Counted from the stretch's first letter, positions 20,418-46,728 are shown. The stretch: DNA of 64,000 bases from Neoechinorhynchus agilis (GCA_051530055.1 CM121342.1:1646797-1710796); one strand, 5' to 3'. The notes: generated by a model not told the origin, from the sequence alone. Made by a program: numbers and translations.

Positions 20418-21299
20418 ATGACTCAAGGGATTAAAACTCACGTATCCGTTGATCGGACAAAGGCATTTTTGGCGATAGTCCGTGCTCTGGACTTATCCCA
20501 AGCGTTCATAAAAAAGAATCCTGTGGATCCTAAGGAAAATAAAAAGGCGACATCAGAGTTCATGCTGAAAGCTGAATCGATGCGGCTTAAGGTATTATCA
20601 GATTCTAAAAGTAAAGTGCTAGAAAATGACGTCAGCGGCTTGTTAGAGATTATAGACCGCAATAATCCATTTCATCTGGCCATTATCGATTGGCTAAAGG
20701 AAACTAATCGGCAGAACGAATTGGTTAATCAAAAACACAGAGAAAACATACGGAGAAAGACTTATGAACGACAACTTGTTTTGAAAATATGTAAATGCTC
20801 AAAAATGAACACGGTCCGTTTTTTCTATGTTCATTTTAGATTAAACCTTCACTCGCCGCATCGTTCGCCCCAATACTTTGCCCTGAGACTTCGGAGACCC
20901 GAGCTAATGACCTAGAGTTCCAAAACGCGCCTGATCTTCAGACTCTTCAAATAGAAAATGAATTACTTTTAAGAAAAAGAAATATGGATTTTTGTTTCGA
21001 CTAAAATCCATCGTTCTTAAATAGAAGACCTTAATGCGATGTCTAATGAGGTAGAAAAAGTCTCCAGAAAAGTTGAAGAGATCGCCAGGCTGCAATCCGC
21101 ATTTGCTGAAAACGTTTTATCACAAAGCGAACTGATTGATCGATTCGCAGATGAAACTGAAACGACAATGGCTACTTTGACCGACACGAACCGGATTCTT
21201 CAAAATGCAACGGCGACCACTTCGTCGCTGCATGTTCATATTTTCATCGTAATTGTCTTAACGTTTTCATTGGCCTTTTTGCATTGGTACAACGAATAA
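20418..21299 (+). CDS. STX18: Syntaxin-18/Ufe1 ER Qa-SNARE; 3 exons (introns 20778-20839 and probably 20973-21024)
   Basis: QTLQIENELL...EVEKVSRKVEEIARLQSAFAENVLSQ...C-terminal TM ending FSLAFLHWYNE. Confidence 0.88.
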
Positions 21300-22249
21300 A
21301 TTTCTCTTTAACAAAAACGTTCTTTTTTGAACGCGAACACGGAAGAATCGCACTTTTAAGCTCATGTAAAAAAGTGATCGCGGAGTCTTTTTTTCTTTTG
21401 AATCGCAAAACAACGAAACGCGGGAACCGATTTTTCTCTATAAAAACTCACATCATGCATACAATTCTTTCGGGTATGCAACGTAAAAAAGACCCTGATT
21501 TAAAAATTGATCTTTTTTTGGTCGCAGAGGACGAATTAATAAGAAATTTTAAGCATAAAGAAAGTTGTCATTTTGCTACTTAAAGAATTATCATTTCGCT
21601 CGTTTCAAGTTTTAATAATTCGCTTGGTCCTACGTTTTGGTCTTAGATAAAGCATTCCGTTACGTCTGCAAAAATTCATCTTCTTTCTGAATAGTAAACA
21701 TCGTCTTTTGTTCTCTCACTTTCTCTATTTCGTTCATCCTTGAAATTGTTTGAAGATTGAACAGTTCCGTTTTTGACAGTGTCTGATTTTCAAGTTCCTA
21801 CTTTCACGCAACCTTCATATAAAGGCATAAAAGTGTGCCTCCGAAATATTGGAATCAATAAAATTCTTTTAATTTTCCGCTATATGAAAAGAGCATGATA
21901 CGGATTTTTTTGATCGTATTTATGGATTTTAAATTTAGCTGCTTCACAAGTTTCACAGGCTCTATCAAAAATCAAATATGAGCTTTATTGATTGAGATAA
22001 TTTTTAATTTGTACCATTTGATACCTACTATTTAATTTTTTTTGATTTGTGGTGATGATAATTTTCCCGATAAAATATATTTAATTGAAATATTTCGAAA
22101 GATTCATTTTTGTCTATTTAATTATTAAGAACTCTGATTGAATGTATTTTTCGATTGGGTTATTTCAATTGTCTAATTAATTGATTTATTTGTCTCAAAT
22201 AATCCCGACATTCATTAGAAAGCATCACTCACGCATTTTTCTCTCTTTC

Positions 22250-22570
22250 TCGAGAGGTTGCGGTTCCATCGACAACTAATTTATCCTGTTTGATGCAATC
22301 CACCCATCGTTTTCTCGTTGGCAATTATTTTTAGGCCAGTTGTGTAGATTAATTTCTTTAGACGATACCGTTCATGTCTCGGTAGCCCTTGATGGTTTAA
22401 CACAAGCTCCGGGCGAAGAACTTGCGCGTCGCTTGGTTGATTCGGTTGTTGGTTGTCATTTGGGTCAAAATTTGGCGAGAATTTTACAGCCGGATGTCCT
22501 TCCTGACGCCAACCCTCCTCCTTTTTCAGCCGGGCTTGGAACCGTCCATGGCAGAGTTCTTCATTAGAAA
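22250..22570 (-). mobile_element. Degenerate RTE-like LINE 3' fragment
   Basis: Reverse strand contains PTRKRWVDCIKQD, resembling the RTE C-terminal R-P-R-K-R-W-x-D motif. Confidence 0.4.
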
Positions 22571-22939
22571 GCATGTATTCTATAATTTATTTTACCAGAA
22601 TATGGAATAATTTTAAAAATAATAATAAAATTATTTCATTAAAAAATGTATACTGTTCTATAATCGCTTTTTTTAACGATGAGTTTCGCGATTATGCTAT
22701 TTTTAAATTAAAAGATTACTATTTCAGTTCCTAAAGAACCAGTGGAAAATAGTAAAAATGTTTTCCTCTATTGTTGATTTCACATGTTGAATCCTTTGTT
22801 AATAAGATCGTCGTTGGTGTTTAATTTGATACTTTATGGAATTTTGGTAGAATGTTTGAGATTACCAATCATTTTTTGTTGTTTACTCTTTGTTTTTTTG
22901 TATTAACTTTCGTATTTTCGCAGATGACTTTAATTTAAA

Positions 22940-24842
22940 ATGGATAACTACAATGCTGATTTGAAGGCTATAAGCCGTCTTGATTTCCTTACACAACCAA
23001 ATACTCAGTTTAACCCTGACGACCTCATAAATCGATACTGCGACCGTCTCCCTGAACTTAGTAACATTCTCGTCAAACTGTACGTTGACGTCTCCGAACA
23101 GATAGTAAGTGTATGCGATTCGAATTACGGTCGTTTTATTGACTTCACCCGTCGTGTGCACGATTTAAGTGAACCGATCCACTCAGCTGCCGTCATTACT
23201 CGTCGTGAATCCAATCAATTTGAGAAGTTGCGTTCAGAGCTATGTTCACATCATGAAAGGTGCCGTTGGATTTTAGACCGATTAGACGAGTTGAACAAAG
23301 AATGTAGCGAACTTGAACTTGCGTTAGAATGCTCTACACTTCTTCAGCACTCTCAAGATTGTTCTCTTGTTGACGTACTAAAATTAAAATATTTCGGAGA
23401 AACGAGTGTGCTCGCCAATGTTAAATGCATTAAGGAGTGCAGTCAGCGATTTGTGGACGAAACGATTGATGCTTTACAGAACGAGTTTTTGAGCACTTTG
23501 GCGGTTGCTAGTATAAAATAGAAGGCGTCATTATCAACTCGAGTTGTACTAAAGGATGACCCTTCTTTTGATAGAAGCAAGTGACCGTCATAAATCCGAC
23601 TTATTTCGTCGGTTGCGAGCTTTGAACGCTTTCAGTAAATCTTTTGTGCATAAAGTTACTCGCCAAATACGCTCTAGCCTTGATCAGTCAAATTCAACAG
23701 AAAGTGAAGTTGAAAACCTGTGCCGGAATTTCAGCTTCCTTTCGCCTGGACAACATGAACGTGTTATTATTCGTTATCTCGTTTGGAATCCTGCATTTCG
23801 ATTCATGACCAGTCAAATCGACTCCACATATCAACAACTTCACCAATGCTGGGATTTTAAGAGTAACCGAAACGAATTTATTGAGCGATTCGTTGAGACA
23901 AAGCGTGCATTTTTGATTCTGCAGCAATATTTTCCATTTAGTGTTCGAGAAGATGTTGATATGATGAGGCTGTTGGGTCATTGGCGTCCTGATGTATATG
24001 GCAGTCTCGTTCTGAGGCGCATTTATAACAATCTAGAGAAATCATTTAGTTCTACTACTGAGGCAACTGAATATTTATTACATATTCTTGAAAAACGGCG
24101 ATTATTGGATTTTGAGGATACGTTCAATAGCTTTCGAGACAGAATGTGTCTAAAATGCATGTCGAGATATGAGATCTTTGTGACCAAGGAAATGACCGGC
24201 AGCATCAGCGATTGGCTTCAGTTTCACGATTGTCTTAAATTAATAGAAAGTAGTACTTGGCATCACGCGAATGTTCCACAATTGCTCATTGATAGATATG
24301 ATCGATTGAAAAATACGTGTAAGTGCAGAATGAAGAGCGAACTCGCTAGACTTTTGGCTAACATTGAAACATTTAAGGAGATTCGAAATATTCCTCGAGT
24401 TTTAAGAACGTCTCCTTCAAACGGTGATCCATCTTCGTAGAGATGTAGGTTCTTAATAAGCTTCATTGTATAAGAATCTTCAGGTTATGTGACAAATGCG
24501 TTTGATAATATCGAACAGCATTTATCTGTTGTAAAAGACAAAGTTGGATCAGATTTAGCATCCGACCTATTAAAACAGTCGATTGAACTAATGGCCGAAG
24601 CTATGAACACTCAATGCATAAGTACATACGAGTCGGTTAATAGTGTGGACCGTGGTTTGGAACAGTTGAAACGGAAACCAAAACGGGTTCGAGAAGGCAA
24701 CGCTAATAGCTATACTTCAAAGCTACTGAATCAGCTAGAGATTGATATAAAGTTATTTAGAGAGAAGTGCAAGCATATAATGCCAAGTGCTCAACCTGAT
24801 GCCCTTTGTGATATTGAACGGATTGTTGAAAAAAGAAATTGA
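22940..24842 (+). CDS. COG2: Conserved oligomeric Golgi complex subunit 2 (divergent); introns 23511-23574 and ~24424-24483
   Basis: N-terminal FNPDDLINR...NYGRFIDFT; HWRPDVY; C-terminal YVTNAF...ESVNSVDRGLEQLKR...KLLNQLEIDI. Confidence 0.8.
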
Positions 24843-24902
24843 GTGAGCGGTTTTTAAGTTTAATATTCTAAACGTACCACCTACTATCCCGTATCTTAGA
24901 TT

Positions 24903-26226
24903 ATGAACAAAGAGTGCAAGATGTTTATTGCAGTCGTTGGGTCATTAACCCTATTAATTTGCCTGGAACAAATGGCAGCTGAACGATACACATCGATGAC
25001 AAACGAAATCGAAGGACGACCAACAGCTCGCAGATTTCCCGGATTTACGCAGAACTTTACAATCATTCTAGCTCCAAAAATACGTGCGTTCAGTCACGCT
25101 TTCACAATGTCCGTTACTGTAATTGTTCTGTCGGAACTTGGAGATAAGACTTTCTTTATTGCTGCAATTATGGCAATGCGCGCTAGACGCGATCTTGTTT
25201 ATATGGGAGCCATGAGCGCTCTCGTTACCATGACCGTCCTCTCAACAGCTTTAGGATCCGTCGTTACTAAATTTGTTCCTCGAAAAATAACCTACTATTT
25301 ATCTGCACTACTCTTTCTTATATTCGGTGTAAAGATGATTTTCGAAGCATACTACACCAAAAGCGAAGGAAATGAAGAGAGTGAACTGGAAAACGTACAG
25401 CAAGAACTTACGGGTAAACGGTTCGGAGAGTACCAAGAAGTATCGGCAGACTGTGAATTCACACTTTTGGGTCATGCGAGCTCGTACTCTTTTTCTTATT
25501 GCTTTAAATTTTTAGTTCCAAAATGCAGTTGGTTTTTGGTGAAATGTTTAGTTTCTGTCGCATAATGCCAAATAGTTACGCTGGAGATTTTTTGTTAATT
25601 TCTTTTGTTCAAAATTGTTCGGTTGGCACTCAAAACGAAGAATGTGCTTTTGATTTCCACTCTTATGGATAGATATTCGTTCCAACATCGGTCGTCGTGT
25701 TATGTTAACAAGGATCTCATTAAATCCGACTTTATATCATGAAAATTAAAGACTAGGGGAACTTGCAGATAAATTTGCCACATCTTGCCATGAAAGGCAT
25801 CTGCCCATTCCTAAGAAATGCTTTAGAGGAGACGTGAATTCGACAGGGGCCATAAGCCGTAGTAGTCTTGAGACAGGAATGATGAAGCCAACGTGGAGAC
25901 AACCTTCTCGCTCGTCAGTTCTGCTTGGGGTCGTTTGTCAAGCTTTTGTGATGACGTTTTTGGCCGAATGGGGTGATAGATCGCAAATCACAACGATTAT
26001 ATTGGCTGCAAGTGAGAATGTGATTGGCGTTTGTTTGGGGGGAATCGTTGGGCATGCCTTCTGTACTGGTATAGCCGTGATCGGTGGAAAGGTACTTGCT
26101 TCTAAGATTTCTGTACGAACCGTCACATTATTTGGAGGAATTGTTTTCGTGGCCTTTGCGATTTCAAGTACGATTTTTGAACATTCGATCGAACTTAATG
26201 CGGAGGCATCGAATGCTACGAAGTAA
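24903..26226 (+). CDS. TMEM165: TMEM165/GDT1 Golgi Ca2+/Mn2+ transporter; one ~400 bp intron (~25410/25430-25826)
   Basis: Two UPF0016 motifs, SELGDKTF and AEWGDRSQ; multiple TM segments. Confidence 0.95.
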
Positions 26227-26689
26227 ATCGTGCCAAAAGGTCTTAAACGAGGCTAATTGTTACTTTAAAATAAAAAAGAAATTGCTGAGAGCATTCCCCA
26301 CTTCCAGTATGTTTCCAAGGGAATAGATGGTACCACTTCCAAGGTATAGAACAAAAAACACAACTCTAAAAAATGTAAGTCAAACGAAACCCATAAAAAA
26401 GTATGAATGTTTTAAATGACTAAATCGTGGTTATTGACTATTTTATGAGTAGATTCGATAGTGTTAGAATGCGCTTATCATTGCTAATCGTGATGTGGAT
26501 CTGGTCGCAAAAAATAGTATCCAAGTGCATAATCTTCAGATTTAACTTTTCTGCATTTTATCTCTCTGTGCTCCGATTCAGAAAAAATCATATTTCTAAG
26601 TAGATTCGTGGTTTACTTTCCCTTAACTTTTAGAATAATACGTATTTAAGATAGAATTTAGCCGATGGATATTTTCTCAATAAGTTTTA

Positions 26690-27090
26690 CAATAATAAAG
26701 CACAAAACGTGCAATCACCACCGTCCGCAAAATTGGAGCTTCTCTCATTCCTCGGCTGTCGCTATCGCGCTTGCAGCATTGCCTCGTTGTACCGCGAGCG
26801 AGATATTTTGTAGCAGGAATACACCTGCTCGTGCGTCGCCGGTCGTTTCTCTGAATTTCTTCGAGAGATCCTGGAGCAGAGAAAGTGCCGAGCTGCCGAG
26901 CGCTCTATACGTCTCTACCCCAAAGGATACAAAATAGTGGAGCCTTGCTAAATCCCTATATTTTCGTACCTTCCTCCCTTCCGCTGCACCTCCAGCGATT
27001 TCGAGAGAGTAGGGAATGTTGCACTGCGAGGGTGTTCACAAACGTGGCGTTCCAGTGAAGGCATTTGCCCTCCTGCCGATGGATTGAGGT
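26690..27090 (-). mobile_element. CRE-clade (RLE) LINE 3' fragment
   Basis: Close reverse complement of 39250-39620 (GKCLHW...FGVE...ISLAVQRGNAAS). Confidence 0.85.
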
Positions 27091-28584: not shown

Positions 28585-31500
28585 TTACGCGTTTTCATCT
28601 ATAGCGATGGTTGTCTTCATTAAGCTCTGCTCTTGAGTATCATCCAGGTAGGCTTGTTTTTCTTTGATCCTTTGCTCTCTTGGTACGTAAAATCGTACCA
28701 ATATCATGAATACGATGTCAACTACGATAATCAGAGCTGCATAAAGGAAGAAGAGCCATATATCCTAATTTTTAAGGTTATAATAATTTGAAGAATGAAA
28801 AGAGAAATGTACCCCGCTTTGATCGCCAGTAGCTGAGTTTATAATAAGGGTTATAAGGTTTCCAATTGAATTAGTCATTAACCAAATTGCGGTCATTACA
28901 GATTTCATACTTGTGTCGGCTTCGGCATAGGCGAAATGTAGTCCAGATATCGAGAAGAGAATTTCAGCAGCAGTTAATACAAGGTATTGAAAGATTTGGT
29001 ACAGGATATGAATTGAAGATTGTCTGTTATCGGCGGTCACGGCATATTCAGTTGGTCGCTTTAAATGTATATGCGAAATGAGAATGAAAAGTGAGAGGCT
29101 ATTTAAATGAAACCTTTAGTCTCAATCCACGCGAAAACGTAACTCTCGGTTTAAAGTTTCTCGTAAACCGGCTCATGAATGTCCCATCATCCTAGAAGGA
29201 ATGACCCAAAATCTCTAATTAATTGTTCGTCTCCTGATCTCACAATTTGGTAAATGAGTTGGTTTAGTTCATTTCGTTTTAATATGATGTCAGAACCTAA
29301 TGGAAGACTGCTTCCTTGAATCACACCGGGTGCACATTTGGAAGTAATCGTCGATGTAGCTAAGATGGATTCCGATACGGCTAAGGCCTGCAAGGAAATT
29401 TAATTGAGAGCTGGTGCCAAGAGATAACAATGTACTTACGTATCCATCGGAGGCTTTTAATGCTTGACCAACGGTCATGAGTTGCGCATCACAGGGAAGA
29501 TCATTGATTAGACGAACGAGTTTTGGGACAGGTGAAAAAAGACCCGGTGCCAGAGTAGTCACTGTTCCGTTGGTCGAATTGTCCATCGATTTGAGGTCAT
29601 TCTTTTTCAAGCTTTGTTGAAGATCCTCTCAAAAGGACAAAAAAATACTCACGACGATTGCGACTTGTACTATCCCTGCAATAACAAATGAAAGCGAGGC
29701 CAATAATAGACCAACAACCATACGATGTAGGGGCCTAAATACGTTGATCATTATTTTTCGATCAAGGTACAAAGAAATATATGAAAAAAAGAAACAATCG
29801 TTCGCAATTGAGACAATGTCGCTCATTCAGTCATTTGTTGCTTTTTTGATCATTCAACAAAATCTCTCCAATGGACTATTTCATTTCCATCGCAGCAAGT
29901 GTCCTCTAGTGGTCGTGAAGCCAGGTAAAATAAAACATTTCCGAGGAAATGTGATGAAAATCGGAGGACCATTTCTTGATCGCTTACAGACGTTCTCTGA
30001 TTTCATTTCAAAATGTAAAATACAAGTAGACGTTCTTAAAAGTTACGACAAGGATGCGTTGGAAGCTGTCTCGAATCCTGGACCAGTTCACTATCACAAG
30101 CTAATCGGTTACGCCATTGACGTTCAGATTTTAGACAAAAAAGGAGTCCCGATTTGCGATGAGCGATGTATGAATAGCATTGAACGAGCGTCAAAGCGCA
30201 GTGAATATCAATGTTTCAAAAATGCACTGTTCTTTATTGGACTTCGTATCAAGGGAAACACTATATACCACGACTTTTACGATATAGAAGATCCGCAATT
30301 CGCGAATCACACAGTTAGAATAGCAAAGATTTGCTAGATTTTAGATTTCTGAGTATTACTTACTTTACCAATAAATTAAATCTTGCGAGGAATGGATATA
30401 GGAAGGTGTCGAAAGCAGGAACGAGAAAGATTACTAAAAGCGGATTAATTGCTTGAATTATATCCGGTGTTATATTCCAGGATCCCTTTTGTGGTAAAAC
30501 ATATTTCTAAGCGTTACAAGGGAATCAACATACCAATTTGCCGTACATGAGTTTTCCCTGAATAACCCACGTTGATCCAGTCTGGTCGTATGGTACGAAT
30601 CTCTTTGTTTTTAGTTACAAACACCTAACCGTTCGAAAAAGATGAGAGAAATTCGTACCGTAAAGTGTCCAGAAAAAGCACAATGGCAAGAAAACCAAAG
30701 ATACAGATAGAACCTGTTTGAAATCCTCGAGCATTGGCCTCTAAAGCATTATTCGAAAATTTATACTTCCCTAGGAAAAGGTCAAACCTCGAATTTGTCA
30801 TCAGCGTAATCGAGCCAGTGAGAGACAGGCCTATTTGGTTTGATTTTCTTAACCTTGTTTTTGATCGCACTTCCAACTGCCAGCATTGAACGCGCCAAAA
30901 TACTACCTTGCGGTGGATTTCTTATATACCATCTCGTTCCAGCAATGAAGAAAACTGTTCTTGCGTTTAAGAAGTCATGTTTAAATTAAAAAACGAACTG
31001 ATTGCCAAAATCATAAGAATTGCGGGAATTGCGAATGCGAGCGTATAGCATCCACATGAATATTTTTCACAGTTGGGATCGTCACTTGGAACAAGACATT
31101 CGACGCCTATAATAAACACTTTAAAGACAGAGTGAACGTGGATGAGTTACTCACTTTTGAGTAGCGGACTTATTATCATAGAAAGGAGCGATCCGACGTT
31201 GATTGCGATATAGAATGCATTGAAAAAGAATGCGAGTTGTTTATCCTTTGAGAAAAAATATTATATTGGAATGTTGCTAAAAACTTACTCTTCCCACGAA
31301 CTGATCGGCGCCAAACGCACTTACACAAGGTTTGATGCCACCGGTTCCAATGGCGATTATGATCAGACAGACAATTACACCGGCCCTGTGGTGATTTGAA
31401 TTTCGATTTCAACAAAAACAAATGAAATAGATTTTGTATTACAAGTTTCGGTGACCAACGGAAGGAATTGCCAATATAGACATTAAACTTGTACCGATCG

Positions 31501-32032: not shown

Positions 32033-33145
32033 AATTTAAACTAATGGAAAGATATAAGCATATCCTGAATCTAAAAATTGACTCGAACATACGAACCTAA
32101 ATGCGTGTTTAAGATAAAAGAAGACTTGAAGATCAACCAAACTTTAGATGTTTTTAGTCAGCGTGATGTTCTCAAATCTTTGAACAATGATACCTTAGAC
32201 AATCTGTCTCATGTAATATAGGTGCAAGGGGTATGCGCTAAATGAGTGCGGTGCGTGACACATCTTTAGCACATTCTCGCGCTTACCTTTGGATTATCAA
32301 GTTGCAAAACTGAACAATAGAACACTCATGTAACCGAGTCATGTGCTCTATTCACCTAAAGAGCCCGCCGCTTTACTTTGCGCAATGAGTGTTAATCACG
32401 TAAAAAGTCGTCCGACTGTTCAATATAAATTGCCCTCAGTTTAAATTTTAAGGCGTTAAAGTCACAGTTCTCGTAATCACAGACACCGATTCTTGAGATG
32501 ACAGTTTTTCGCTTCATTTTTTTGGCAGACAAATGGATCTTATCAGACGGCATTTAGAACATTCATATCTCATGGGAACCCAAGAAATGAACGAATGTCA
32601 GGCAAAACGCCATGTTTGTCAGTCTGTATGTCTCGGCCGCTATAATTCCTCATTAAACCTGAAACTCTATACCGATTGGAAAAATAAATGAACACTAATT
32701 TCCAAGTATAAATGATAAATGTCGTATGCCGTTTCGCGAACCAAACCCGAGCAAAGGAATTTAAAGTACTCAATGCTGGTGAAGCTATTGCCAATTTGCT
32801 ACGATGTCAATCAATTCAGACATATCAATTATTACGGTATGTAATAGAATCACAAACGAGAAAAATAAAGTTTTGTATCTACGACTATGATAGGAATTTT
32901 TTATTAGTGAAAAAAACGAATTTTTTTAATTAGATTGAATGATATTGAATGATGTTAAGATAACTAATTGATTGGATGATCTCCCATGAAGCTGTATCAC
33001 CATCGTCCTGCTGCATTGTTAAACTTTCCTTAAAATATACTTTTGGTGAACATAATCCCGGTCATCACCTAGTTGATTTATTTGAGATATTTTGCGAGGT
33101 AACTTCACTTCGAGACAAAGCTTTGCTGTATTTTCCTCCAAAAAC

Positions 33146-33187
33146 AATGACTGATGAGGCGAGGTTTCTTCGCGAAATATCTACAAT
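33146..33187 (+). ncRNA. Degenerate hammerhead motif
   Basis: CUGAUGA-G-GCGA(gguuucu)UCGC-GAA-AUAU-C; stem I poorly paired. Confidence 0.45.
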
Positions 33188-34139
33188 AAGTCAAATAGGT
33201 TATGAACGGGATTATGTTCACCAAAATTATATTTTGACTAACGCGAAGGATTTTCTCTGTCGATGATTTCCTTAAAATGATCCACCCATCTTGTTTTTAA
33301 TCCCTTTCTTTTGCCCTTTAAATTCATGACTTTGAAAAAATTGATAGTTGATTCCTTCATAAAATCGTTGGTATTAAGCATATTATTTTGAATGTGAAAT
33401 AAGTTTTACTTTAAAATGGAGTCATTGTAAGGAGGCGCCGATAAAAGTTCTTGATTTTTTAGAAGGGAAGTCGAGTCCTAAGACCCTATTATTTCTTTTG
33501 AATAAAAAAATCAGAAAACAGAATGCGTGCATTTAGACCTCTTTTTATAAGGGTGTGTGAAACATAGGATTTGGTGAGAAGTGTAATGACCGTTTTCGCG
33601 GATTTATGCTTAAATTTGCCGGTCTCATTCGGTTTTGAAAGATCAGTAAATAATTATCCGCATAAACAAGAGGAAATATTAATTTAGATTTATTAGTTTC
33701 TTTAAAAATAAATAACATTATAATTAAGAATATTACGGCTGAGAGAGGAGACCTTTGTGGTACGCGAAACTTTGTGTAGAAGCAATTACGATTTGGGTCA
33801 ATGTCGCATTGTGTAAATAAGATGCTTGGGTGCTTTAAAAGAAATTAAGGTTTCACATAAAAAGTTCCGATTTGCAGAAATTGGAATAAAAATTTATTTA
33901 CGTTGATGCGTGATCCATTCAGAGAATGAATAACACCCTATTCGGTATGAATGCCTAAAAATAGTATGGAATTAGTTTCGTTTTGACGAGGAAATTAAGT
34001 AGCTTCTTATTTACGGTCCTCTTTAAACAAGAGACGATTTTTAATTGATATTATTCTTATTTTCGAAAGGTTAGAAATTTTCTTCGACTTGAATTTATAA
34101 ATTCTTTGATTCCACAAAATTTTATAACCACAAAACACT

Positions 34140-37100
34140 TAATTCGCTCTAACACGGCCGCCATACGGATGCTTGCGGCGTTTCCCCGCTGCACGGCGAG
34201 ACTAATAGTTTCCTATAGGTCAATCCCATCCGGTTAGTGACGACCATTTCGATAGGGCCTCTTTGAAATGCATTTCATTAAACACATCGAAAACTTTTTT
34301 CGAGTGTTCACGACTCGATCATATTGACGCAAGGAAGAAGGGTAAGGCAAGGTCACTCGTACATTTAATGCCAGAACCAGCGAAAGATGTAAGCAAGGTT
34401 GCCTTCATTTTAATTCGTCGAAAGCTTTTAAGTTTGTCGCGTACGAGGTTGTTGGACTTAGCCAAGTCGTTCTTATGGTCGAAGGTTGGAGTGGTTCTGA
34501 ACTTGCAGAGAAGCTTCGGTATGTAGACGCGATTTTTGATGAGAAATACTACCTCGTGCACTTTTAGCTTTAAAGCCTTCTCACATAGCAGCTCCAGAGT
34601 GGCCAATGTGCTTTCGATATCCATTGGAACGTTCTGCCCTAGTACGCATGAACCTAGTAAGCTGAGCTGAATCAGCCTCAAACCTGGTGCGACGGAGGTA
34701 TGGCCCGATCCACTCCATCTATGTTAATTAACAGCAGCTCACACTTCGAGAAGTTGAGCTCCAAACCTAACGCTGAAATCGTTTCCGAAATCTTCAGGTT
34801 CCTTAAGACAACCTCCGGCTTGTCTTCAAGAATAGCGTCATATAAATACCTGGCGTTGAATTTTCACCTTCAAGTGAAAATCCGATCGAGCCCAGAGGAT
34901 CTCTCTGTTGGACACCGAATTGAGACCAATTCAGATTATTCTCATAGAATAAAGGGGTCTTCGAGCCATAAGCTGTGTTGAAATATGGGAAGTTTCCAGA
35001 AGGTGATCCGAGATTCTATTTAAGAGCACGTTTCTACCTCGTGAATTAAAAGCGTTTCTGAAGTCAATCTTGAGCACAGTGGTTTGGTGGGTAGATGACT
35101 CGATGAAATTCCTTAGGGCATGCACGATCGCTTCTGATCCACATGGTGTACAACAACTGAGTTGTATGGGGCGAAGTAGCAGGCCAACTTTCTGTGTGAT
35201 CTTTCTGCATGTGATTTTTGCGAATAATCTTCGCAAGGTACAGCCTGTGGCAATCGGGTGAATTCTCCTTTTTTGATAGAGCGAACAAGGATGAAGAGAA
35301 GAAGAGCGCTGTGTTGGAATTGTATCAAGGTCTTCCCTCAAGAGCCGATCAAGTGAAAATCCGATCGAGCCCAGAGGATCTCTCTGTTGGACACCGAATT
35401 GAGACCAATTCAAATTATTCTCATAGAATAAAGGGGTCTTCGAGCCATAAGCTGTGTTGAAATATGGGAAGTTTCCAGAAGGTGATCCGAGATTCTATTT
35501 AAGAGCACGTTTCTACCTCGTGAATTAAAAGCGTTTCTGAAGTCAATCTTGAGCACAGTGGTTTGGTGGGTAGATGACTCGATGAAATTCCTTAGGGCAT
35601 GCACGATCGCTTCTGATCCACATGGTGTACAACAACTGAGTTGTATGGGGCGAAGTAGCAGGCCAACTTTCTGTGTGATCTTTCTGCATGTGATTTTTGC
35701 GAATAATCTTCGCAAGGTACAGCCTGTGGCAATCGGGTGAATTCTCCTTTTTTGATAGAGCGAACAAGGATGAAGAGAAGAAGAGCGCTGTGTTGGAATT
35801 GTATCAAGGTCTTCCCTCAAGAGCCGATCAAGTGAAAATCCGATCGAGCCCAGAGGATCTCTCTGTTGGACACCGAATTGAGACCAATTCAAATTATTCT
35901 CATAGAATAAAGGGGTCTTCGAGCCATAAGCTGTGTTGAAATATGGGAAGTTTCCAGAAGGTGATCCGAGATTCTATTTAAGAGCACGTTTCTACCTCGT
36001 GAATTAAAAGCGCTTCTGAAGTCAATCTTGAGCACAGTGGTTTGGTGGGTAGATGACTTGATGAAATTCCTTAGGGCATGCACGATCGCTTCTGATCCAC
36101 ATGGTGTACAACAACTGAGTTGTATGGGGCGAAGTAGCAGGCCAACTTTCTGTGTGATCTTTCTGCATGTGATTTTTGCGAATAATCTTCGCAAGGTACA
36201 GCCTGTGGCAATCGGGTGAATTCTCCTTTTTTGATAAAGCGAACAAGGATGAAGAGAAGAAGAGCGCGTTGGAATTGTATCAAGGTCTTCCCTCAAGAGC
36301 CGATCAAGTGAAAATCCGATCGAGCCCAGAGGATCTCTCTGTTGGACACCGAATTGAGACCAATTCAGATTATTCTCATAGAATAAAGGGGTCTTCGAGC
36401 CATAAGCTGTGTTGAAATATGGGAAGTCAGAAGGTGATCCGAGATTCTATTTAAGAGCACGTTTCTACCTCGTGAATTAAAAGCGTTTCTGAAGTCAATC
36501 TTGAGCACAGTGGTTTGGTGGGTAGATGACTCGATGAAATTCCTTAGGGCATGCACGATCGCTTCTGATCCACATGGTGTACAACAACTGAGTTGTATGG
36601 GGCGAAGTAGCAGGCCAACTTTCTGTGTGATCTTTCTGCATGTGATTTTTGCGAATAATCTTCGCAAGGTACAGCCTGTGGCAATCGGGTGAATTCTCCT
36701 TTTTTGATAGAGCGAACAAGGATGAAGAGAAGAAGAGCGCTGTGTTGGAATTGTATCAAGGTCTTCCCTCAAGAGCCGATCAAGTGAAAATCCGATCGAG
36801 CCCAGAGGATCTCTCTGTTGGACACCGAATTGAGACCAATTCAAATTATTCTCATAGAATAAAGGGGTCTTCGAGCCATAAGCTGTGTTGAAATATGGGA
36901 AGTTTCCAGAAGGTGATCCGAGATTCTATTTAAGAGCACGTTTCTACCTCGTGAATTAAAAGCGTTTTTAAGTCAATCTTGAGCACAGTGGTTTGGTGGG
37001 TAGATGACTCGATGAAATTCCTTAGGGCATGCACGATCGCTTCTGATCCACATGGTGTACAACAACTGAGTTGTATGGGGCGAAGTAGCAGGCCAACTTT

Positions 37101-39235
37101 CTGTGTGATCTTTCTGCATGTGATTTTTGCGAATAATCTTCGCAAGGTACAGCCTGTGGCAATCGGGTGAATTCTCCTTTTTTGATAAAGCGAACAAGGA
37201 TGAAGAGAAGAAGAGCGCTGTGTTGGAATTGTATCAAGGTCTTCCCTCAAGAGCCGATCAAGTGAAATCCGATCGAGCCCAGAGGATCTCTCTGTTGGAC
37301 ACCGAATTGAGACCAATTCAAATTATTCTCATAGAATAAAGGGGTCTTCGAGCCATAAGCTGTGTTGAAATATGGGAAGTTTCTAGAAGGTGATCCGAGA
37401 TTCTATTTAAGAGCACGTTTCTACCTCGTGAATTAAAAGCGCTTCTGAAGTCAATCTTGAGCACAGTGGTTTGGTGGGTAGATGACTTGATGAAATTCCT
37501 TAGGGCATGCACGATCGCTTCTGATCCACATGGTGTACAACAACTGAATTGTATGGGGCGAAGTAGCAGGCCAACTTTCTGTGTGATCTTTCTGCATGTG
37601 ATTTTTGCGAATAATCTTCGCAAGGTACAGCCTGTGGCAATCGGGTGAATTCTCCTTTTTTGATAGAGCGAACAAGGATGAAGAGAAGAAGAGCGCTGTG
37701 TTGGAATTGTATCAAGGTCTTCCCTCAAGAGCCGATCAAGTGAAAATCCGATCGAGCCCAGAGGATCTCTCTGTTGGACACCGAATTGAGACCAATTCAG
37801 ATTATTCTCATAGAATAAAGGGGTCTTCGAGCCATAAGCTGTGTTGAAATATGGGAAGTTTCCAGAAGGTGATCCGAGATTCTATTTAAGAGCACGTTTC
37901 TACCTCGTGAATTAAAAGCGTTTCTGAAGTCAATCTTGAGCACAGTGGTTTGGTGGGTAGATGACTCGATGAAATTCCTTAGGGCATGCACGATCGCTTC
38001 TGATCCACATGGTGTACAACAACTGAGTTGTATGGGGCGAAGTAGCAGGCCAACTTTCTGTGTGATCTTTCTGCATGTGATTTTTGCGAATAATCTTCGC
38101 AAGGTACAGCCTGTGGCAATCGGGTGAATTCTCCTTTTTTGATAGAGCGAACAAGGATGAAGAGAAGAAGAGCGCTGTGTTGGAATTGTATCAAGGTCTT
38201 CCCTCAAGAGCCGATCAAGTGAAAATCCGATCGAGCCCAGAGGATCTCTCTGTTGGACACCGAATTGAGACCAATTCAGATTATTCTCATAGAAAGGGCC
38301 TTCGAGCCATAAGCTGTGTTGAAATATGGGAAGTTTCTAGAAGGTGATCCGAGATTCTATTTAAGAGCACGTTTCTACCTCGTGAATTAAAAGCGTTTCT
38401 TAAGTCAATCTTGAGCACAGTGGTTTGGTGGGTAGATGACTTGATGAAATTCCTTAGGGCATGCACGATCGCTTCTGATCCACATGGTGTACAACAACTG
38501 AGTTGTATGGGGCGAAGTAGCAGGCCAACTTTCTGTGTGATCTTTCTGCATGTGATTTTTGCGAATAATCTTCGCAAGGTACAGCCTGTGGCAATCGGGT
38601 GAATTCTCCTTTTTTGATAGAGCGAACAAGGATGAAGAGAAGAAGAGCGCTGTGTTGGAATTGTATCAAGGTCTTCCCTCAAGAGCCGATCAATCACCCT
38701 GAGCAAAGCGTTTCCTATCGAAATCGCAGCGGATCCACTCAATGCTGTGGGCGTAGACCATTTGTCAGTTCCCCGAGCCATAAGAAAAAAGGAGATCGCT
38801 TGTTTTAGTTATGCAAAGGAGACTGGCATGTATTCATCAGAAACGGCCCGAAGACTTTCCGAAGGAATGATTACATCACGTTTGGGCGAGGGATGCTTTT
38901 CTCGTAAAGCTGCTAGCGTCGATGTAATATCAGTGCAAAAAGTATCATCCGACGACAGAGTACGAACTGCTCCTCGGACCTCTCCACATAGTTTTGCCGA
39001 GGAACATGCATCCACGGGTCGAGTATCCCGGGTATTCCTCCGGCTCGGTTCACTTTTTCACCCTCTGCAAAAAGGATTCGAAAAGCACCTCATACGTAAG
39101 TGCCCGCTCTCTACTCGTTTTCCTCGAGGTTGGTTTCGGAAAACGAGTCGTTGGTGCTGAGGACCAAGCGAGGGAAAGCGAAAAGTCGGAGTCACAGGCG
39201 GTCACCAGAGCTCTGAGCAGCGTTGATCATTATTT
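34140..39235 (-). mobile_element. CRE-clade RLE LINE, decayed, with an internal 8-fold amplification of the RT core
   Basis: GEVRGAVRTLSSDD...LREKHP; HPIATGCTLRRLFAK...GSEAIVHA...LKIDFRNAFNS; GVQQRDPLG; YLYD...LGLELNFSKCE; LLGS...PKLL..FRT; C-terminal LAVQRGNAAS at ~34170-34200. Confidence 0.88.
34871..38690. repeat. Tandem array of 8 units of 475-479 bp
   Basis: Unit starts (caagtgaaa) at 34871, 35350, 35829, 36305, 36781, 37259, 37737 and 38216; near-identical. Confidence 0.98.
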
Positions 39236-39630: not shown

Positions 39631-39659
39631 AGGATTAAAAAAATGTTTTCTTCTAAAAA

Positions 39660-40420
39660 CATCTCTCTCACCTCACTCTAAGTTTTTCTTATATTCCGAC
39701 GATCTCACCCTCATCACAAAATCGCCCTTCGACTCCTCTCCCGCTCCTTAAGATCTAACGAAATCATCCACATAAAAGATTTCTGCAGCAATCACAAACT
39801 CTACCTTAACTTCTCTAAATGCTTGGAAATGATCCCACCAATCTCTAACTGCCTTATGTCCGACTCCGAGCTTCCAATTGACATCCAACAAGTCACCTCC
39901 CTCAAAATTCCGGGTCTCTAATTTCAATCAAATCTAAAATGCGACTCACACATTACACTTTCCTTCAAACGAAATACCTTTAAAATCTACGCCTTCGAGC
40001 ACTTCCGCCATTTAGGAGTTCCTTCGCCCAATCTCTCCATATTTTACAACAGCATTATTTTACTTCCAATCACCTACGGCTATTTCATCTTTTGCAGCTT
40101 ATCCAAATCACAAATCCGTCGCTTTGAAACGTACAACACTCGCAATCCGAATTCCTTAAATCCTCTTATACCTAGCACCTCTCTCTACCTCTGCTCCTTT
40201 TTCCATGCTGCCCAATCTTCTGGGATATCATAAATTTAAATGAACCTAAGGAAATACCCAACTTCACAAACTATCCCACACAATAACCACCAACATTCCC
40301 ACCCGACCGTAACCGTCATCAACTCCAAAATAAACAACCATTTTAAAGGAACCCGTCATATTGTTCGAGTGTTCACGATGACCCAGGAGTATATGGTTCC
40401 TGTACTTTGAACAATAATAC
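39660..40420 (+). mobile_element. CR1/L2-type LINE 3' fragment (family A)
   Basis: KDFCSNHKLYLNFSKC; FQSNLKCDSHI...LGVP..NL..FYNSII..ITYG...SQIRRFE. Confidence 0.8.
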
Positions 40421-41053
40421 GTGTTGTTATAGAATCGCTGAAATATAATTACTGTTAGAATTTCCAACAATAAAATCTCGAACCCAGAATAGAAGCTTGT
40501 GAATATGTTATTTTTGATAAAAGGGAGACATTCCTGGGATTAATGTAAACGTTTGTGATGCAGAGGGTAAATTTTATCAAAAAAGGACTTTGAATTCTCA
40601 AATATTGTACAGCATAAATGTCACTTTTATATTAGTGTAAAAGCTTAGGTTTCAGGACTTTCAAACAACAGAGGTCGCCCCTGTACATAAACCGCTGTTC
40701 TTCGTCGCATTTTTCAAACATATCAATTCTCTACCTTCTGCCTGGGCTGGTGAGCACAGGAAGTTCTGCTTACAAAGGTTTGACAAATAGATTAGCTAAC
40801 TATTGTTCTACTATTCTACATGTAGCGCAGTTTCTTATGCTCTTGTTGTTGCTATCGAAAGAAAATTTCCTGTTTCTGAAAAGTGAAAAGTTATAGTATC
40901 ATTTTTATCCCTTACTAATTCGTGTTCCGCACTATAAGTGTAGACAAGATTATGTTTAAATTTAAAATGGAATCACAAGGTTGCCAATCGTTCAAGTTGG
41001 ACTCATTCCCTATTGAGATTTGAAGTCCATCTGTCACATTGGATTGTACAACT

Positions 41054-43559
41054 TTATACTTCAACGCTCCGTCTTTTTTGATCATCGACAGATTTTGAAG
41101 TTTGATCCGCTACCTTCGGTTCCATGGCAGATTCGCTTGCACTGTTGACGTTTCCCTTGTTTTTTCTGCTACATCTAAGGGAAGCCATGAACTTCTGCAA
41201 CTTGTCTGCGATGAACCTTAACGCTGGATGAAAACACGTAGTTTTTTTGGTTAAAGAGAGCTTTGTGAAGTCAATAAAAACGGCATTTTAACTTACGTTT
41301 AATTAATAGTCAGAGCATATCTGCAATACAGAGAGCTTACCTTTTACAGGTTTTGAAGAAAAACTCATTTTGTGTCTGAGTGGTGATGTTGAAATGGAGG
41401 AGTAATTGGCGACGTGGATGTAAAGAATCGAGAAAACAATATGTCTGGCAAAGAAAGAGTGTGTGTGTCAAAAGAACAATACCAGGCGAGGCACCAATGA
41501 AGCAAAAAGTCAATCGTCTGGTGAAATGTAAAAGAATGCAATTATCCCACTGGAAAGGATTGGTACAAATGTCCCACACAAAATATGTGACTTTAACACA
41601 CGAGTTGTACAGGATTTTCTATCCATCAAGATTACTGCTCTTCATTCTGGAGCAAACTGTGTATCGAATTAACTTCTGATTAAATGTAGCGTTCATCTAC
41701 CGTTCCCTTCTTTGCGCAATTGATGCTCTTTGAGAAAGTACAAGTGGCGTTAGGTGATTTCTTGCAACAGAGTTGGATTTCCACGTTCGTACATATTGAT
41801 CCTCTTCAGAATGTACATTGGAGTTTAGTGGCGTCGAATTTCTTTTTGTAGATATTATAGACGGAACAAGTTGAGTATTCATCGAATGGCTATCTCCTCT
41901 AGAATGATGACTTTGACTTCTTGAATGTTGATTCGAAATTTGTAGACTATTGGAATGTCGGAACATATCCAGTTCGTACTCATCTGTTTCAAAGTAACCT
42001 TCCTTGGCTCTGAAATCCGCAGTTGATCGATTATGCACGACTGAGTTGGCTCGATTTTTCGATTGAGGTAACCCCAGAAACTCTAAAGCGCTATGGACTT
42101 TCGCCATTAGTTGGGAAGCAGTACTTGGAGACGGATTTCGCATTTTGTCCGATCGCTTGAATTTACTTTCATTTTTTAGAAGACGGTGTTTGTTTTTTGA
42201 CGTGGATAATTTATTTTGAATTGCATGATACGCCAAATACACAAATTGATATTGTTCCTAATTATTTTTATTTAAGCATAGAAACGATTATGGATACTAA
42301 CAAGAGTCTGGATCATGCCAACACGTTGTCTTCTCAAATCTTTTGCGATTCGAAACACAAGAACTTGATTGGATTCGTCCTAGACAGTATTTTCGAAGAG
42401 TATTGACAATTTCCTGTTTAAATAAGCATACATTAGGTTGTTGTAAACTTTGTCGGTGTTTAAAGTAGTTCATTATTATATCAATTGCTATCAGAGTCCC
42501 GGTTCGTCCACATCCAGCGCTGATTAGAATTTGTGTGTGTTTAAATAGGCCCGATAAGAACAAACCTGCAGTGAACAACCATTATAGGTCGGTTTTGCCC
42601 AAGTGCAGTTCGATGTCTTGATTTTATAAGATTGTCTTTGACGGCATGGATATGATCAAGAAGATTGAGAATCGGTTCTGTTCCATCCAGTGGACATCCC
42701 CGATCGGGCCACCGAGTAAAATGAATGTGAATAAATTTGTGCACGGTATCGCCATAATAGATTCCTAGCTGCCTAATGATGAAATTCCCAGTTACGTCGA
42801 CTTCCGGTGAACTTGAAACCGAACGAATGACAAAGGAATTTACTGGATACTCTTCGTTTTGAGTACTAGGCCAATATCGAAAGCATTTTGACTAAATGGG
42901 TTTATTTCTCTTTTTCGACAAAAATCAATGTAAACTAACGTCATTCTGATCGGCTTCGTCGACAATACAAACAACTATCTCGATCTGGTACTCCCATATC
43001 ATGCGGATAAAATCAAAACACGTCGATCGAGTTGGTCCCTGTGCTGCTATATATTTTTCTCCCATTAACTTGTCCTATTTTTATCGAGTCAAAATAAGGA
43101 AATCATTAATTTGCAAAAAGACTCGCATTTATATGGCTTGCGTTGATATAATCGTTTCCGTCTCCGGCTGTGATTGGCAGAAGTCGAACTCTATTATCTT
43201 CATCTACCAATTGTGCAATAAAATCGAAGTGGACAAAGGTTTAAAAAACTCACAAGGTATAATATCCCTATAACGGTTTTTGTGGTAATTCATTGGAAGA
43301 AGTCCATATGAATGTGGTAGGGGAACCGATTGACTTTGAACTCGATGTCTGCTTGTCATTCGAATTTCCTAACGAGAACTTGAGAAATGCGGCTCGCAAC
43401 ACTAAAACCAACATTAAACTCTGCGCTTGAGGTTTGCGGTACAACAACGCTGTTGCCATTGCGGATCATTGCTATGTGCCTCTTCATAACAGTACGAACA
43501 CTCTCGCTATTGTCGTTTATTGAAGGTAATAGTTGTTGAGCATCTCGTCGAGAATCCAT
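41054..43559 (-). CDS. PTPN12: Non-receptor protein tyrosine phosphatase, PEST subfamily (PTPN12/18/22-like); 3' exons uncertain (the stop may be at 41697)
   Basis: KNRYRDIIP, DYINAS, YIAAQGP, KCFRYWP, WPDRG, HCSAGCGRTG, LRRQRVGMIQTLEQY, then a long Ser-rich tail; symbol is family-level. Confidence 0.88.
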
Positions 43560-44426
43560 CGTCCAAGGAAGCTAAAGTGGAAGATAACAATTTTCACTGG
43601 AAAGGAAGGATTGAGCGTTTTTCAAAAGCTAGCGAATGACACAGTTGTCTAGAGAAACACGAGTGCGTAAAAATGACGAAGGTTTCATAAGGTGCGGAAA
43701 AGCTCTCATTAATAAAGGTGAAGATCTATCCTGAACTACAATAGTCAAAGCGCTACATCGTCCTTAAATTGAGAGGACATACTTGAGATAGGTTACACTT
43801 TATCGAAAATTGTAGTTAAGATCTTGTTGCGATTTGTGGCGTTTAAATTCTATACAATTTTCATTGTTTAAATGCTGAAAAAAAAGGAAAACTTTATTAC
43901 CAAGATCCCTACTAACGCAATATATGTGCGAAAATAAGAAGCATTAAAATGTTAGAGTAACTGAAAAGATCTTTTACTCAACGTTGAAGTACATTGAAAA
44001 TACTTATAACTAACACATTAGAACGTCTACTAACTCATCGAGCAAAACAAAGAGTGAGCGGTTAAATTGGAGTGCACAATGAGTATAAAAATTGCGCAGT
44101 TCTAATTGAAAAATAACGTAAATCTCAGAGAAATGGTTTGACATTCTAATGTGTTACTGGTAGCTCGAAAGGTCAAAGAGTTGTTTAGAGAAAACTACAC
44201 TGCATTACTACTTAACTAATAAACGTGTACTAATAATTAAAGATAAAATCCATGAGTATGTGGAAGTGGGGAAAAATTATATATCCAAGAATCACTTTAA
44301 TTCAAAAATATTTCGTATAATCACGCTGGACTTCTTCAGTCAATTATCTAAAAAGGAATTTGGAAACTTAGTGATTTTTGGATATATAATTTTTCACCAA
44401 TTCCACGTACTAATAATTTTTAAATA

Positions 44427-44644
44427 CAGTAGAACGTCGTTTATCCGCGAATTAATTGGGACCGAACACTATCCGGATACGAGGTTTGTTTTCAAAGGTA
44501 AAATTACATGATTTTAACTTTATCATTGAAAATAATCATTTGTTTTTCTCTGTAGAAATGGACACCTTCGTTTTTTCGCGCAACAGTAATGGAGTAGTAC
44601 AGCATTCCGGATAATAGACGTTTCGGATAATCGATGTTCCACTG
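44427..44644. mobile_element. Tc1/mariner-pogo-type MITE (218 bp)
   Basis: TIRs cagtagaacgtcgtttatccg / cggataatcgatgttccactg, flanked by a TA duplication. Confidence 0.85.
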
Positions 44645-45862
44645 TATTCAATAGTAGGCTAAACGGCAATCGTTCTGGCTTTAGAATCAACAGGATTGTA
44701 AATGCGCAGTTTCACAATACCGTAAGTCGTATTTTCGTATAATGTTGCGGAGGAATAATTGAACGCTTCTGATATTTTCGACTCTGTCACAAAATCTAAT
44801 GAAACAATGACTTGACCTTTTACGTCGATTCTGTAAACTGAGAGAGCGCATTAATGTGGCTTTCGTTTGCTGAGAACATATTCATGAAATCTCCGTTTTT
44901 TCAGTTTAATTGTTTTTCGTTCTTTGTCTTGAAAGCCTTTTGATTTTAATAAAAGTACCAGAAGATGCCATTAAGTAAATTTTCCGTTCGTTTATTGTCG
45001 ACATTTTTGGCAGTTTACATCGGTTAGATGTGCTTCAAGGAAAATACGATCTGACGATTGCTGTCAAGTTGACAATAAAAGGATTTGTTGAAAAATGAAA
45101 CTGCTCATGATTTTTGTGTAGTGGCGACAAAAATTATGTAAATTTAATGAAACGATATTTGGGCTCAATCGAGAGCCTTTATCAAGATTGTTTGCAAGTT
45201 CATTCACATTTGAAAAACTTGAATAAAAGAATTAAAAATTAGATTAGGGTCAAATTCATAAACCTTAAAACAATTTAACTCGCTATCAACATTTGAGATA
45301 ATAAACACGACCAACATTATTGTTTGAAGATTGAATTGTTCATGTTTGTATCTGGCGTAAAAAATAAAAGATTATAAATTGATTCCAATATTTCAGAGGC
45401 ACAATCTTTTGGCTTTATCAAAGTTGTTTTAGTGTGATACAAACACCGACATTATTAGAAATAAAAAAGGTTTCATCAACAACAATACTAAGAATGTCAG
45501 CGGTACAACTGCCAAAATATAATGTTTATACGAATTAATTGATACCGGATACCATTCGGATACGAGATTGTGGTGTATTCAGTTTTTAAAGATAGACCCC
45601 AGATATCAAAATTCTTAACATGCTTTGGGAAAGTGGTCTTAGAAAAAGGAAAACTAGAGTATAATTACATTACTTTAACTTTATTTGTGGCATTGCCAGG
45701 ATGAAGAACAAGTTTCAGCGATTACCAGGACAGGATTTTATAAACCTTCCTCTTTTAAAAGAGGACTAGGTTTGAAGTTTTTGTATCTTAAATCCACAAT
45801 CTAACAAAGCGCCAGTGCCTTCCGCTTTCAAAAATAAAGTCAGTATTTAAAATTTAATACCA

Positions 45863-46728
45863 TTAAACCAAAAGAAGAGCATTAACGCATCCATCATTTT
45901 CGGGACGATTCGTGATTTGAGCATATTTGCCCCACACGACCTTTCCTCCAGGAGTCACAAGTCCAAGTTCACTCACGTTCACTTCAATGATTGTTCCCTT
46001 GCTAAGAACTCCAAGATTGGTGAAGACCTGAGAACTCGGATTCCGCTTTACTCCTAGAATTTGAAGAGCAAAGGTTGCTTTCAATTCAGGATGTGTTACA
46101 TTTGCGACTCGGAAACGTAAAGCCATCGGCCGTATAAACCTTTCAAATTTCGGTGGCTTCCTTGTAAAGGATTCCGGAACAAAGCATGGACGAGTTACCA
46201 TTCGTTTCCATGCCTTCTTTTGTCTTTTGCCGGTCTTAATGACTTTAAACACATCAGCGTCGCTTCCCGAGAAAATTCACATTTCAGCTTTTTAAAGCCT
46301 CAAATCACTTAATTATGAGCCCAGTGGAAAAACGTGAATTCTCTCGATACAGCCCCTATTTTAGGAATCGGAACGGTCCACTTTCCACCTTTTTCTTTTC
46401 TTTTCTGCTTAATTGTATTGCTTAGCACTTTCGCTCGGGATTCCTCGTTTCTGTCAATCAAATACGAAGGTATGGGGTAATCGTCCTCTTTTGCTTTTCG
46501 TTCAGTCTTGGTCTCTCGTTCTTCATGTGACTTTATAGTTCGCTTCATTGTGATCTTTTCAACGCGTCGTTGACGATTGTACAATTTCGCCTTGATTCCT
46601 CGCAGAGTACGAGCTTTACGAGATCGAACATGAGCAAAACGCCCTTCCTTTTTTCGCTGCCGTTCAAAATGATCAAATCTACGTCCATATCTTTTAATAT
46701 GCTGCTCAATATATTCGTTCTGCGGCAT
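45863..46728 (-). CDS. NSA2: Ribosome biogenesis protein NSA2 (eS8 family), 2 exons
   Basis: MPQNEYIE...[20 protein letters not shown]...KAWKRMVT...[12 protein letters not shown]...GKYAQITN...NALLLV. Confidence 0.98.

Follow-up and report, generated by a model that had tools for sequence, protein, structure and literature searches.

Introns that begin with GA and end with AG (G*-AG introns) occur in Oikopleura dioica and Eurytemora affinis, where they are not known to rely on terminal hairpins or to be found together with them. In Amoebophrya, introners have non-canonical ends, inverted repeats that measure 8-20 nt and, at their boundaries, 3-5-nt direct repeats (Farhat et al. 2021, PMC7789003). 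In the nonconventional introns of euglenids a stem joins the ends, leaving a 3-nt spacer on the 5' side and a 5-6-nt spacer on the 3' side, with CAG at positions +4 to +6 and CTG at -8 to -6 (PMC12501133). For Fritillaria borealis, a later summary describes non-canonical introns at species-specific positions and GT-AG introns at conserved ones, with a proposed origin from miniature inverted-repeat transposable elements (MITEs) (Henriet et al. 2019, summarised in PMC11282704). Here we examine a stretch of 64,000 nt of the genome of Neoechinorhynchus agilis, an acanthocephalan or thorny-headed worm (GCA_051530055.1 CM121342.1:1646797-1710796; hereafter the window) in which three short introns, i.e., intron 2 of STX18, intron 8 of an SLC15 (PepT-like) gene and the only intron of NSA2, perhaps joined by intron 1 of a COG2-like gene, form a real subclass where a strong terminal hairpin coincides with non-canonical boundaries that restore homology. 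The explanation that we consider best, and about which we are evenly divided, is lineage-specific intron gain from short foldback insertions that would be excised at near-GT-AG ends.

Introns were defined by joining open reading segments and checking the joins against homologs, which gave about 30 introns in the hexokinase, STX18, COG2-like, SLC15, PTP and NSA2 genes; positions 10418-31299 of the window correspond base for base to the public locus CM121342.1:1657214-1678095 (GCA_051530055.1). A splice-site profile (position weight matrix, PWM) was built from the 26 canonical GT-AG introns of the window, 21 of which measure 42-57 nt (the shortest seen being 42 nt) and have donors like GT[AGT]AGT. 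Lengths outside this norm belong to a few long introns (107, 156, 629 and, in GDT1/TMEM165, ~400 nt) and to the candidates of an earlier, sequence-only reading of this DNA, which had singled out six short introns as a class of foldback introns; all six, inverted repeats included, are present in the sequence where it placed them. For 29 introns the folding energy (minimum free energy, MFE) was expressed as a z value against 500 dinucleotide-preserving shuffles, and a second, independent run of the folding tool was made. The majority of the catalogued introns are GT-AG introns of 42-57 nt with structure at the level of shuffled sequence, and the 23 introns that were not candidates range from z -1.4 to +2.0. 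Significant folding is seen in NSA2 (z -4.47, or -3.82 in the independent run), STX18 intron 2 (-3.59 and -3.20) and SLC15 intron 8 (-3.00 and -2.82), while COG2 intron 1 (-2.58 and -2.48) is borderline given that 29 introns were tested.

These values bear on the simplest alternative, namely that the stems reflect chance or composition in AT-rich introns and that there is no class at all. It does describe intron 3 of the PTP gene (z -1.39 and -1.35), whose 6-bp stem is at chance level (p = 0.46), and probably also STX18 intron 1 (z -1.34 and -1.17), where a 10-bp perfect repeat has p = 0.005 taken alone and ~0.13 after correction, and it draws some strength from the post hoc choice of cases by the sequence-only reading. 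As an account of the whole set we hold it to be very improbable: three introns reach z <= -3, a level that length-matched windows drawn at random from the genome attain in 1.3% of cases (z <= -2.5 in 3%), the shuffles preserved dinucleotides, the independent folding run agrees, and the three introns that are neither GT-AG nor GC-AG occupy ranks 1-3 of 29 by z, for which the chance probability is 1/3654 (~3e-4). Three stems are thus clearly real (NSA2, STX18 intron 2 and SLC15 intron 8), one is borderline (COG2) and two are unconvincing. The earlier idea of stems as a class feature holds for the first three; it does not extend to the PTP intron, which is at chance level, nor to STX18 intron 1, whose repeat is not terminal, and neither of these two can be kept as a member. 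No inverted repeat of at least 12 nt is present in the long introns (629, ~415, 156 and 107 nt).

The most secure case is STX18 intron 2 (20973-21024, plus strand; 52 nt, GA...AG), nearly all of which is one hairpin with arms at 20977-20995 and 21000-21018 (16/19 complementary), a 4-nt loop, a 5' tail of 4 nt (GAAA) and a 3' tail of 6 nt (AAATAG). Removal from GA to AG yields the junction ENELLL/KDLNAMS (the slash marking the splice), which is ungapped against a 46%-identical homolog (P0122). Exon 2 aligns to the same protein, on which ground we judge it real. The sole in-frame GT-AG choice is an intron of 34 nt (20994-21027), below the 42-nt minimum, with a donor PWM score of -1.1, and it would add six residues inside the SNARE motif, i.e., in the heptad region, so that STX18 intron 2 has no usable GT-AG option. 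Because the junction is ungapped against P0122 and the only GT-AG option is short with a poor donor, the GA-AG ends predicted here are robust, barring assembly error, and they are the only ones that we would call so; the junction is very probably truly non-canonical. The STX18 model has no Pfam match, and we take the gene to be STX18 on the basis of similarity and of the homolog P0122.

The NSA2 intron (46263-46345, minus strand; 83 nt, GAGAGA...GGGAAG) is the strongest hairpin of the set. Its inverted-repeat arms (46330-46346 and 46268-46284) match at 15 of 17 positions, and the terminal stem of 17-18 bp begins at the last exon base and leaves a 3' tail of 5 nt (GGAAG). Exact removal from GA to AG reads KIGAVS/DADVFKV, in a segment that is equally long in 119 of 120 homologs, and none of the 120 has extra residues there. 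In a search with NSA2 the best named matches are Pomphorhynchus and rotifers, and the best transcript match is to a 78%-identical relative. Facing the A at position +2 of the intron, and paired with it, is a T of the second arm, from which it follows that this base was dictated by the palindrome rather than by splicing and is no stray base-call error. This last point touches a further alternative, according to which the unusual ends stem from assembly or base-call error, or from a disabled allele or pseudogene in the assembly. A single assembly is the basis of all our observations, and a GA donor would result if one T at position +2 had been misread as A. However, each of the genes has both exons intact, with 63-78% identity to relatives. 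The inserts consist of unique sequence, 52-83 nt long, and go beyond single-base errors; their arms carry 1-3 mismatches and the inserts are therefore not brand new. It is also implausible that 64 kb should contain null alleles of three essential genes, and we regard this account as very improbable.

SLC15 intron 8 (30587-30658, minus strand; 72 nt) is written here as GT...CG and ends in a 5-nt 3' tail, ATACG. Its arms (30647-30662 and 30589-30604) match at 14 of 16 positions, and the boundaries are each overlapped by one copy of the direct repeat TACG (4 nt; exon copy 30659-30662, intron copy 30587-30590). Owing to this repeat five equivalent registers give the same mRNA, i.e., GT-CG, GG-AC, CG-TA, AC-AT and TA-CA, none of them canonical. 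Taken together, the arms and TACG have the appearance of terminal inverted repeats accompanied by a target-site duplication. Exact removal reads LCFFWTLY and then DQTGSTW, a junction (FWTLY/DQTGSTW) that is ungapped against human PepT1, identical in a 77%-identical relative (P0123) and near-identical in Pomphorhynchus laevis. The boundaries that the sequence-only reading had proposed on grounds of restored homology, i.e., GA-AG in two introns and GT-CG and GC-AG in one each, thus fared unevenly: those of STX18 intron 2 and of the PTP intron are ungapped against homologs, the register of SLC15 intron 8 is ambiguous because of TACG, and both NSA2 and SLC15 intron 8 contain in-frame GT-AG alternatives. 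The actual splice junctions of all three hairpin introns are ones that we infer from such protein alignments.

Those in-frame alternatives are the core of the most serious competing account. It holds that the inserts are real and are spliced at inner canonical sites, the hairpin being irrelevant and the non-canonical ends an artefact of enforced collinearity. For NSA2 the canonical intron would be 46263-46333 (minus strand; GTTTTT...GGGAAG, 71 nt), which uses the same acceptor together with a donor 12 nt into the insert (cacGTTTTT) and adds the residues REFT; for SLC15 it would be 30582-30629 (minus strand; GTTAGG...ACCAG, acceptor PWM -0.6), which puts ten residues in place of DQ, a net gain of eight. 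The two donors score 5.7 and 5.3, respectively, near the median of true donors (6.1) and higher than 95% of the decoy GTs in exons, the 48 nt of the SLC15 alternative are typical here, being the modal intron length of the genome, and GA-AG and GT-CG introns are very rare in most animals. Since these donors score like real ones, the non-canonical status of the NSA2 and SLC15 introns is a matter of protein conservation only. Such conservation speaks for exact excision: the insertions fall in length-invariant segments, as given above for NSA2, and the SLC15 alternative breaks FWxxxDQxGS, a conserved motif that P0123 and P. laevis have in identical form. The account is moreover restricted to NSA2 and SLC15, as the option in STX18 intron 2 is the short one with the poor donor described above. 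That in-frame GT-AG alternatives exist argues neither way, because they are expected by chance and turn up in 53-100% of shuffled introns. Weighing all this, we consider splicing at the inner sites unlikely, although it is the alternative that we take most seriously; a truly non-canonical junction seems to us rather probable for SLC15 intron 8 and an open call, equally poised, for NSA2. In-frame AT-AC pairs also exist, without the ATATCCTT donor, and a U12-type AT-AC reading was rejected.

A comparison with relatives suggests that the hairpin introns were gained within the N. agilis lineage. NSA2 has no intron at all in P. laevis, and its introns lie at residues ~20 and 64 in Brachionus and at ~20, 45, 112, 141, 172 and 220 in Rotaria; the exon is unbroken through residue 128 in Pomphorhynchus, Brachionus and Rotaria, so that the N. 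agilis position is absent from all three. Similarly, P. laevis encodes FWTLFDQTGSTW contiguously and lacks the position of SLC15 intron 8, while intron positions 1-7 and 9-11 of this gene are common to P. laevis and N. agilis. Given their absence from relatives, the NSA2 intron and SLC15 intron 8 are insertions that belong to the lineage of N. agilis alone, and recent lineage-specific gain, also anticipated by the earlier reading, holds on present homology evidence for both of the hairpin introns for which it was tested. The SLC15 gene of P. laevis (locus L005) differs in scale as well, several of its introns being kilobases long at the same positions at which those of N. agilis measure 42-57 nt; its annotated protein ends early, after FAYAE.

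We therefore arrive at a view of intron birth that joins these strands conditionally. Short palindromic (foldback, MITE-like) DNA of ~50-85 bp would have been inserted in a coding exon, each insertion giving rise to one young intron (STX18 intron 2, the intron of NSA2, SLC15 intron 8 and, possibly, COG2 intron 1). The insert would most likely be removed from the pre-mRNA by the ordinary spliceosome, which would accept near-consensus ends that are one position off GT-AG (G[A]...AG, G[A]...AG and GT...[C]G, the deviating base in brackets). In the precursor the palindrome arms would pair, and the stem would hold the exon ends no more than ~5-6 nt apart. We consider the stem to be a relic of the inserted DNA that may help splicing by holding the ends together and would not be required for it. 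As for the source of the inserts, we infer a mobile or repair-derived foldback. All three carry terminal inverted repeats (14/16 in SLC15, 15/17 in NSA2 and 16/19 in STX18 intron 2), and inverted repeats with at least 11/12 matches and loops of 40-75 nt number 13 in the window versus 5.0+-2.3 in shuffles, i.e., ~2.6 times as many. An origin from the flanks, through duplication (direct or inverted, of the snap-back or polymerase-theta type) of sequence up to 400 nt away on either side, was also considered and rejected, no score exceeding those of shuffles.

Several observations weigh against this proposal. A blastn-short search of the 64-kb window for other copies of the hairpin introns returned chance 10-14-mers only and thus no sign of mobility; the earlier statement that the hairpins share no sequence, and are not one MITE family, stands within these 64 kb and is not to be generalised to the genome. 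Inspection of the sequence at the boundaries of STX18 intron 2 and of the NSA2 intron disclosed no target-site duplication. Where a stem buries the 5' splice site, U1 would be expected to bind less readily, not more. Under exact excision neither NSA2 nor SLC15 intron 8 has GT-AG ends, and in both an in-frame GT-AG alternative with a near-median donor is at hand. The sample is small, comprising three cases in one window.

The folds themselves invite a bolder interpretation, in which introns of an animal would be excised under the guidance of the stem and independently of the terminal dinucleotides, with cuts at the stem base (5') and ~5 nt beyond the stem (3'), as in Euglena or Amoebophrya. The NSA2 intron and SLC15 intron 8 share one geometry, the last exon base pairing with intron position -6 and 5 nt being left over as a 3' tail, the nonconventional introns of Euglena require a stem together with a 3' spacer of 5-6 nt (PMC12501133), and SLC15 intron 8 has both inverted repeats and direct repeats at its boundaries, as do Amoebophrya introners (PMC7789003). 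Yet the geometry is seen in two introns only, the tails of STX18 intron 2 being 4 and 6 nt, there is neither a CAG/CTG motif nor a 3-nt 5' spacer, most introns (~26 of 30) are of an obviously conventional type, and all boundaries deviate from GT-AG in one position only, which looks like tolerant recognition by the spliceosome. We deem stem-guided excision improbable. In the predicted folds a long stem has the 5' site at its base, and the 3' site is reached 5-6 nt along an unpaired tail; a bulge-helix-bulge intron (of tRNA or archaeal type), in which both cuts would fall in 3-nt bulges on either side of a 4-bp helix, was rejected. Short introns with paired ends also resemble, at first sight, mirtrons, i.e., introns that serve as microRNA precursors. 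However, the stems of NSA2 and SLC15 intron 8 (12-18 bp) enclose irregular loops of 40-45 nt and the entire hairpin of STX18 intron 2 spans no more than 42-44 nt, where a mirtron would fold over its full length into a pre-miRNA-like hairpin with a small loop and more than ~22 bp of stem. The ends are non-canonical whereas mirtrons use canonical splice sites, and a search against Rfam gave 0 matches within the window; we find a mirtron-like nature scarcely credible.

Returning to gain from foldback insertions, the closest match among described systems is that of the Amoebophrya introners, which have in common with the N. agilis cases complementary ends, boundaries other than GT-AG, lineage-specific positions and a failure of gene predictors. 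The direct repeats of the introners overlap the boundaries, a likeness found in one of our three introns (the 4-nt TACG of SLC15 intron 8). Introners account for >60% of Amoebophrya introns, many of them in repeated families (PMC7789003), as opposed to ~10% in the N. agilis window, each unique within 64 kb; Amoebophrya is, furthermore, a dinoflagellate, whereas N. agilis is an animal in which the boundaries are one base off GT-AG. Euglenid introns come second. Here too a stem joins the ends, sliding direct repeats blur the boundaries, and the 3' spacers (5 nt in NSA2, 5 nt in SLC15 intron 8 and 6 nt in STX18 intron 2) are comparable. In contrast, the 5' spacers of N. agilis are 0, 0 and 4 nt and not 3, a test for the Euglena motifs found no CAG/CTG, the downstream exon of NSA2 starts with C where Euglena requires a purine (PMC12501133), and there is no sign of a separate excision machinery in N. 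agilis. Third is Fritillaria, likewise an animal with non-canonical introns at species-specific positions; going by the summary of that work, AG-AC and AG-AT prevail among its boundaries and introns of this kind dominate the genome, whereas those of N. agilis have GA-AG or GT-CG boundaries, are in the minority and have so far shown no repeated family. With Oikopleura and Eurytemora the likeness is one of ends, a GA donor with an AG acceptor being required by homology in STX18 intron 2 and favoured by it in NSA2. In our provisional classification, which is pending, the N. agilis cases would be insertion-derived, structure-bearing, non-canonical introns, i.e., a known kind in a new animal phylum. 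For rotifers and acanthocephalans, searches of the literature turned up no account of non-canonical introns, the N. agilis genome papers make no mention of introns or splicing, and a broad introner survey leaves rotifers and acanthocephalans unmentioned.

The remaining candidates differ in how near they come to this subclass. Intron 1 of the COG2-like gene (23511-23574, plus strand; 64 nt) is a canonical GT-AG intron that forms an imperfect hairpin, its palindrome having arms at 23505-23531 and 23556-23580 with 22 matches in ~26, and it is a possible canonical member of the hairpin class. The palindrome (23505-23580) reaches 5-6 nt into both exons (TTGCTA/.../AAGCAA); as it spans both exon edges, we presume that the pre-insertion site was itself a small palindrome. 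The gene has a weak Pfam match to COG2_C, below the cut-off, and presumably is COG2, a name that we give on the basis of similarity. STX18 intron 1 (20778-20839, plus strand; 62 nt, GT-AG) carries its 10-bp perfect repeat (20802-20811 and 20828-20837) in the 3' half, where positions +25 to +34 pair with -12 to -3; the ends are not brought together, there is no terminal stem, and this borderline case is left outside the hairpin class. PTP intron 3 (43075-43126, minus strand; 52 nt) runs from GCGAGT to ATAG. Its donor scores 3.1 despite the C at +2, its acceptor is AG, and its junction is fixed by homology, DYINASHIN/DKLMGEKYIAAQGP being ungapped against PTPRA; the 8-residue spacing in DYINASHIN-DKLMGEK-YIAAQGP confirms GC-AG against the GT-AG alternative. 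It matches ordinary GC-AG introns fully, with an otherwise consensus 5' site and no difference, and is one of them and no member of the hairpin class.

Public annotation falters at several of these places. The public model of STX18 (P0121, hypothetical protein ACOME3_004963) matches the window exactly in its other exons and skips the conserved exon 2 (gene span 20418-21299), the COG2-like gene (22940-24842) is split into two genes of 193 aa and 408 aa exactly at intron 23511-23574, and of the GDT1/TMEM165 gene (25879-26226) only the C-terminal 115 aa are annotated. Gene sets, and claims of gene loss, for parasites that come from predictors confined to GT-AG introns will be biased. Non-GT-AG hairpin introns could point to an unusual way of intron removal in an animal. 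Should the junctions lie where homology places them, N. agilis would be the first member of the Syndermata, and among very few animals, with recent introns that have both non-canonical ends and hairpins, and it would offer a tractable metazoan case for the birth of introns from inserted DNA and for the tolerance of the spliceosome towards odd ends. Were removal guided by the stem, foldback DNA could seed new introns, and there would be parallels to splicing in Euglena and Amoebophrya.

Two introns lie far above the 42-57-nt norm, i.e., SLC15 intron 10 (29735-30363, 629 nt) and an intron of GDT1/TMEM165 (~25414-25828, ~400 nt) whose boundaries are uncertain. A NOLC1-like repeat gene (52611-63000), with a very long serine- and lysine-rich coding region and an array (53392-62277) of ~93 copies of a 96-nt unit, was kept out of the intron catalogue, as its open frame shifts several times, which may reflect either introns or assembly noise.

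The window is also rich in larger foldback and repeated DNA. A foldback MITE family is present at 12075-12295 and 33032-33235, with partial copies at 19917-19981, 22040-22102 and 52213-52243; the elements measure 200-220 nt and are almost all arm (98/100 nt with 91 matches in one, 75 nt with 64 matches in the other), the copies are 73-85% alike, and two of the partial ones flank the STX18 gene. Unrelated intergenic palindromes occur at 44245-44420 (arms of 52 nt, 45 matches) and 8587-8715 (arms of 38 nt, 32 matches). A tandem array at 34870-38693 consists of eight copies of a 479-bp unit, 98% identical, with a fragment of a reverse-transcriptase-like reading frame, and a satellite-like array at 49831-52214 of ~12 copies of a 201-bp unit, 83-86% identical. 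By eye only, we further recognised a reverse-transcriptase-like open reading frame (ORF) of 763 aa at 909-3200 (minus strand), where no called gene is on record, another element bearing a reverse transcriptase at 15586-17384 (plus strand), and, at 47500-48760, a zinc-knuckle ORF beside a putative GIY-YIG (Penelope-like) ORF.

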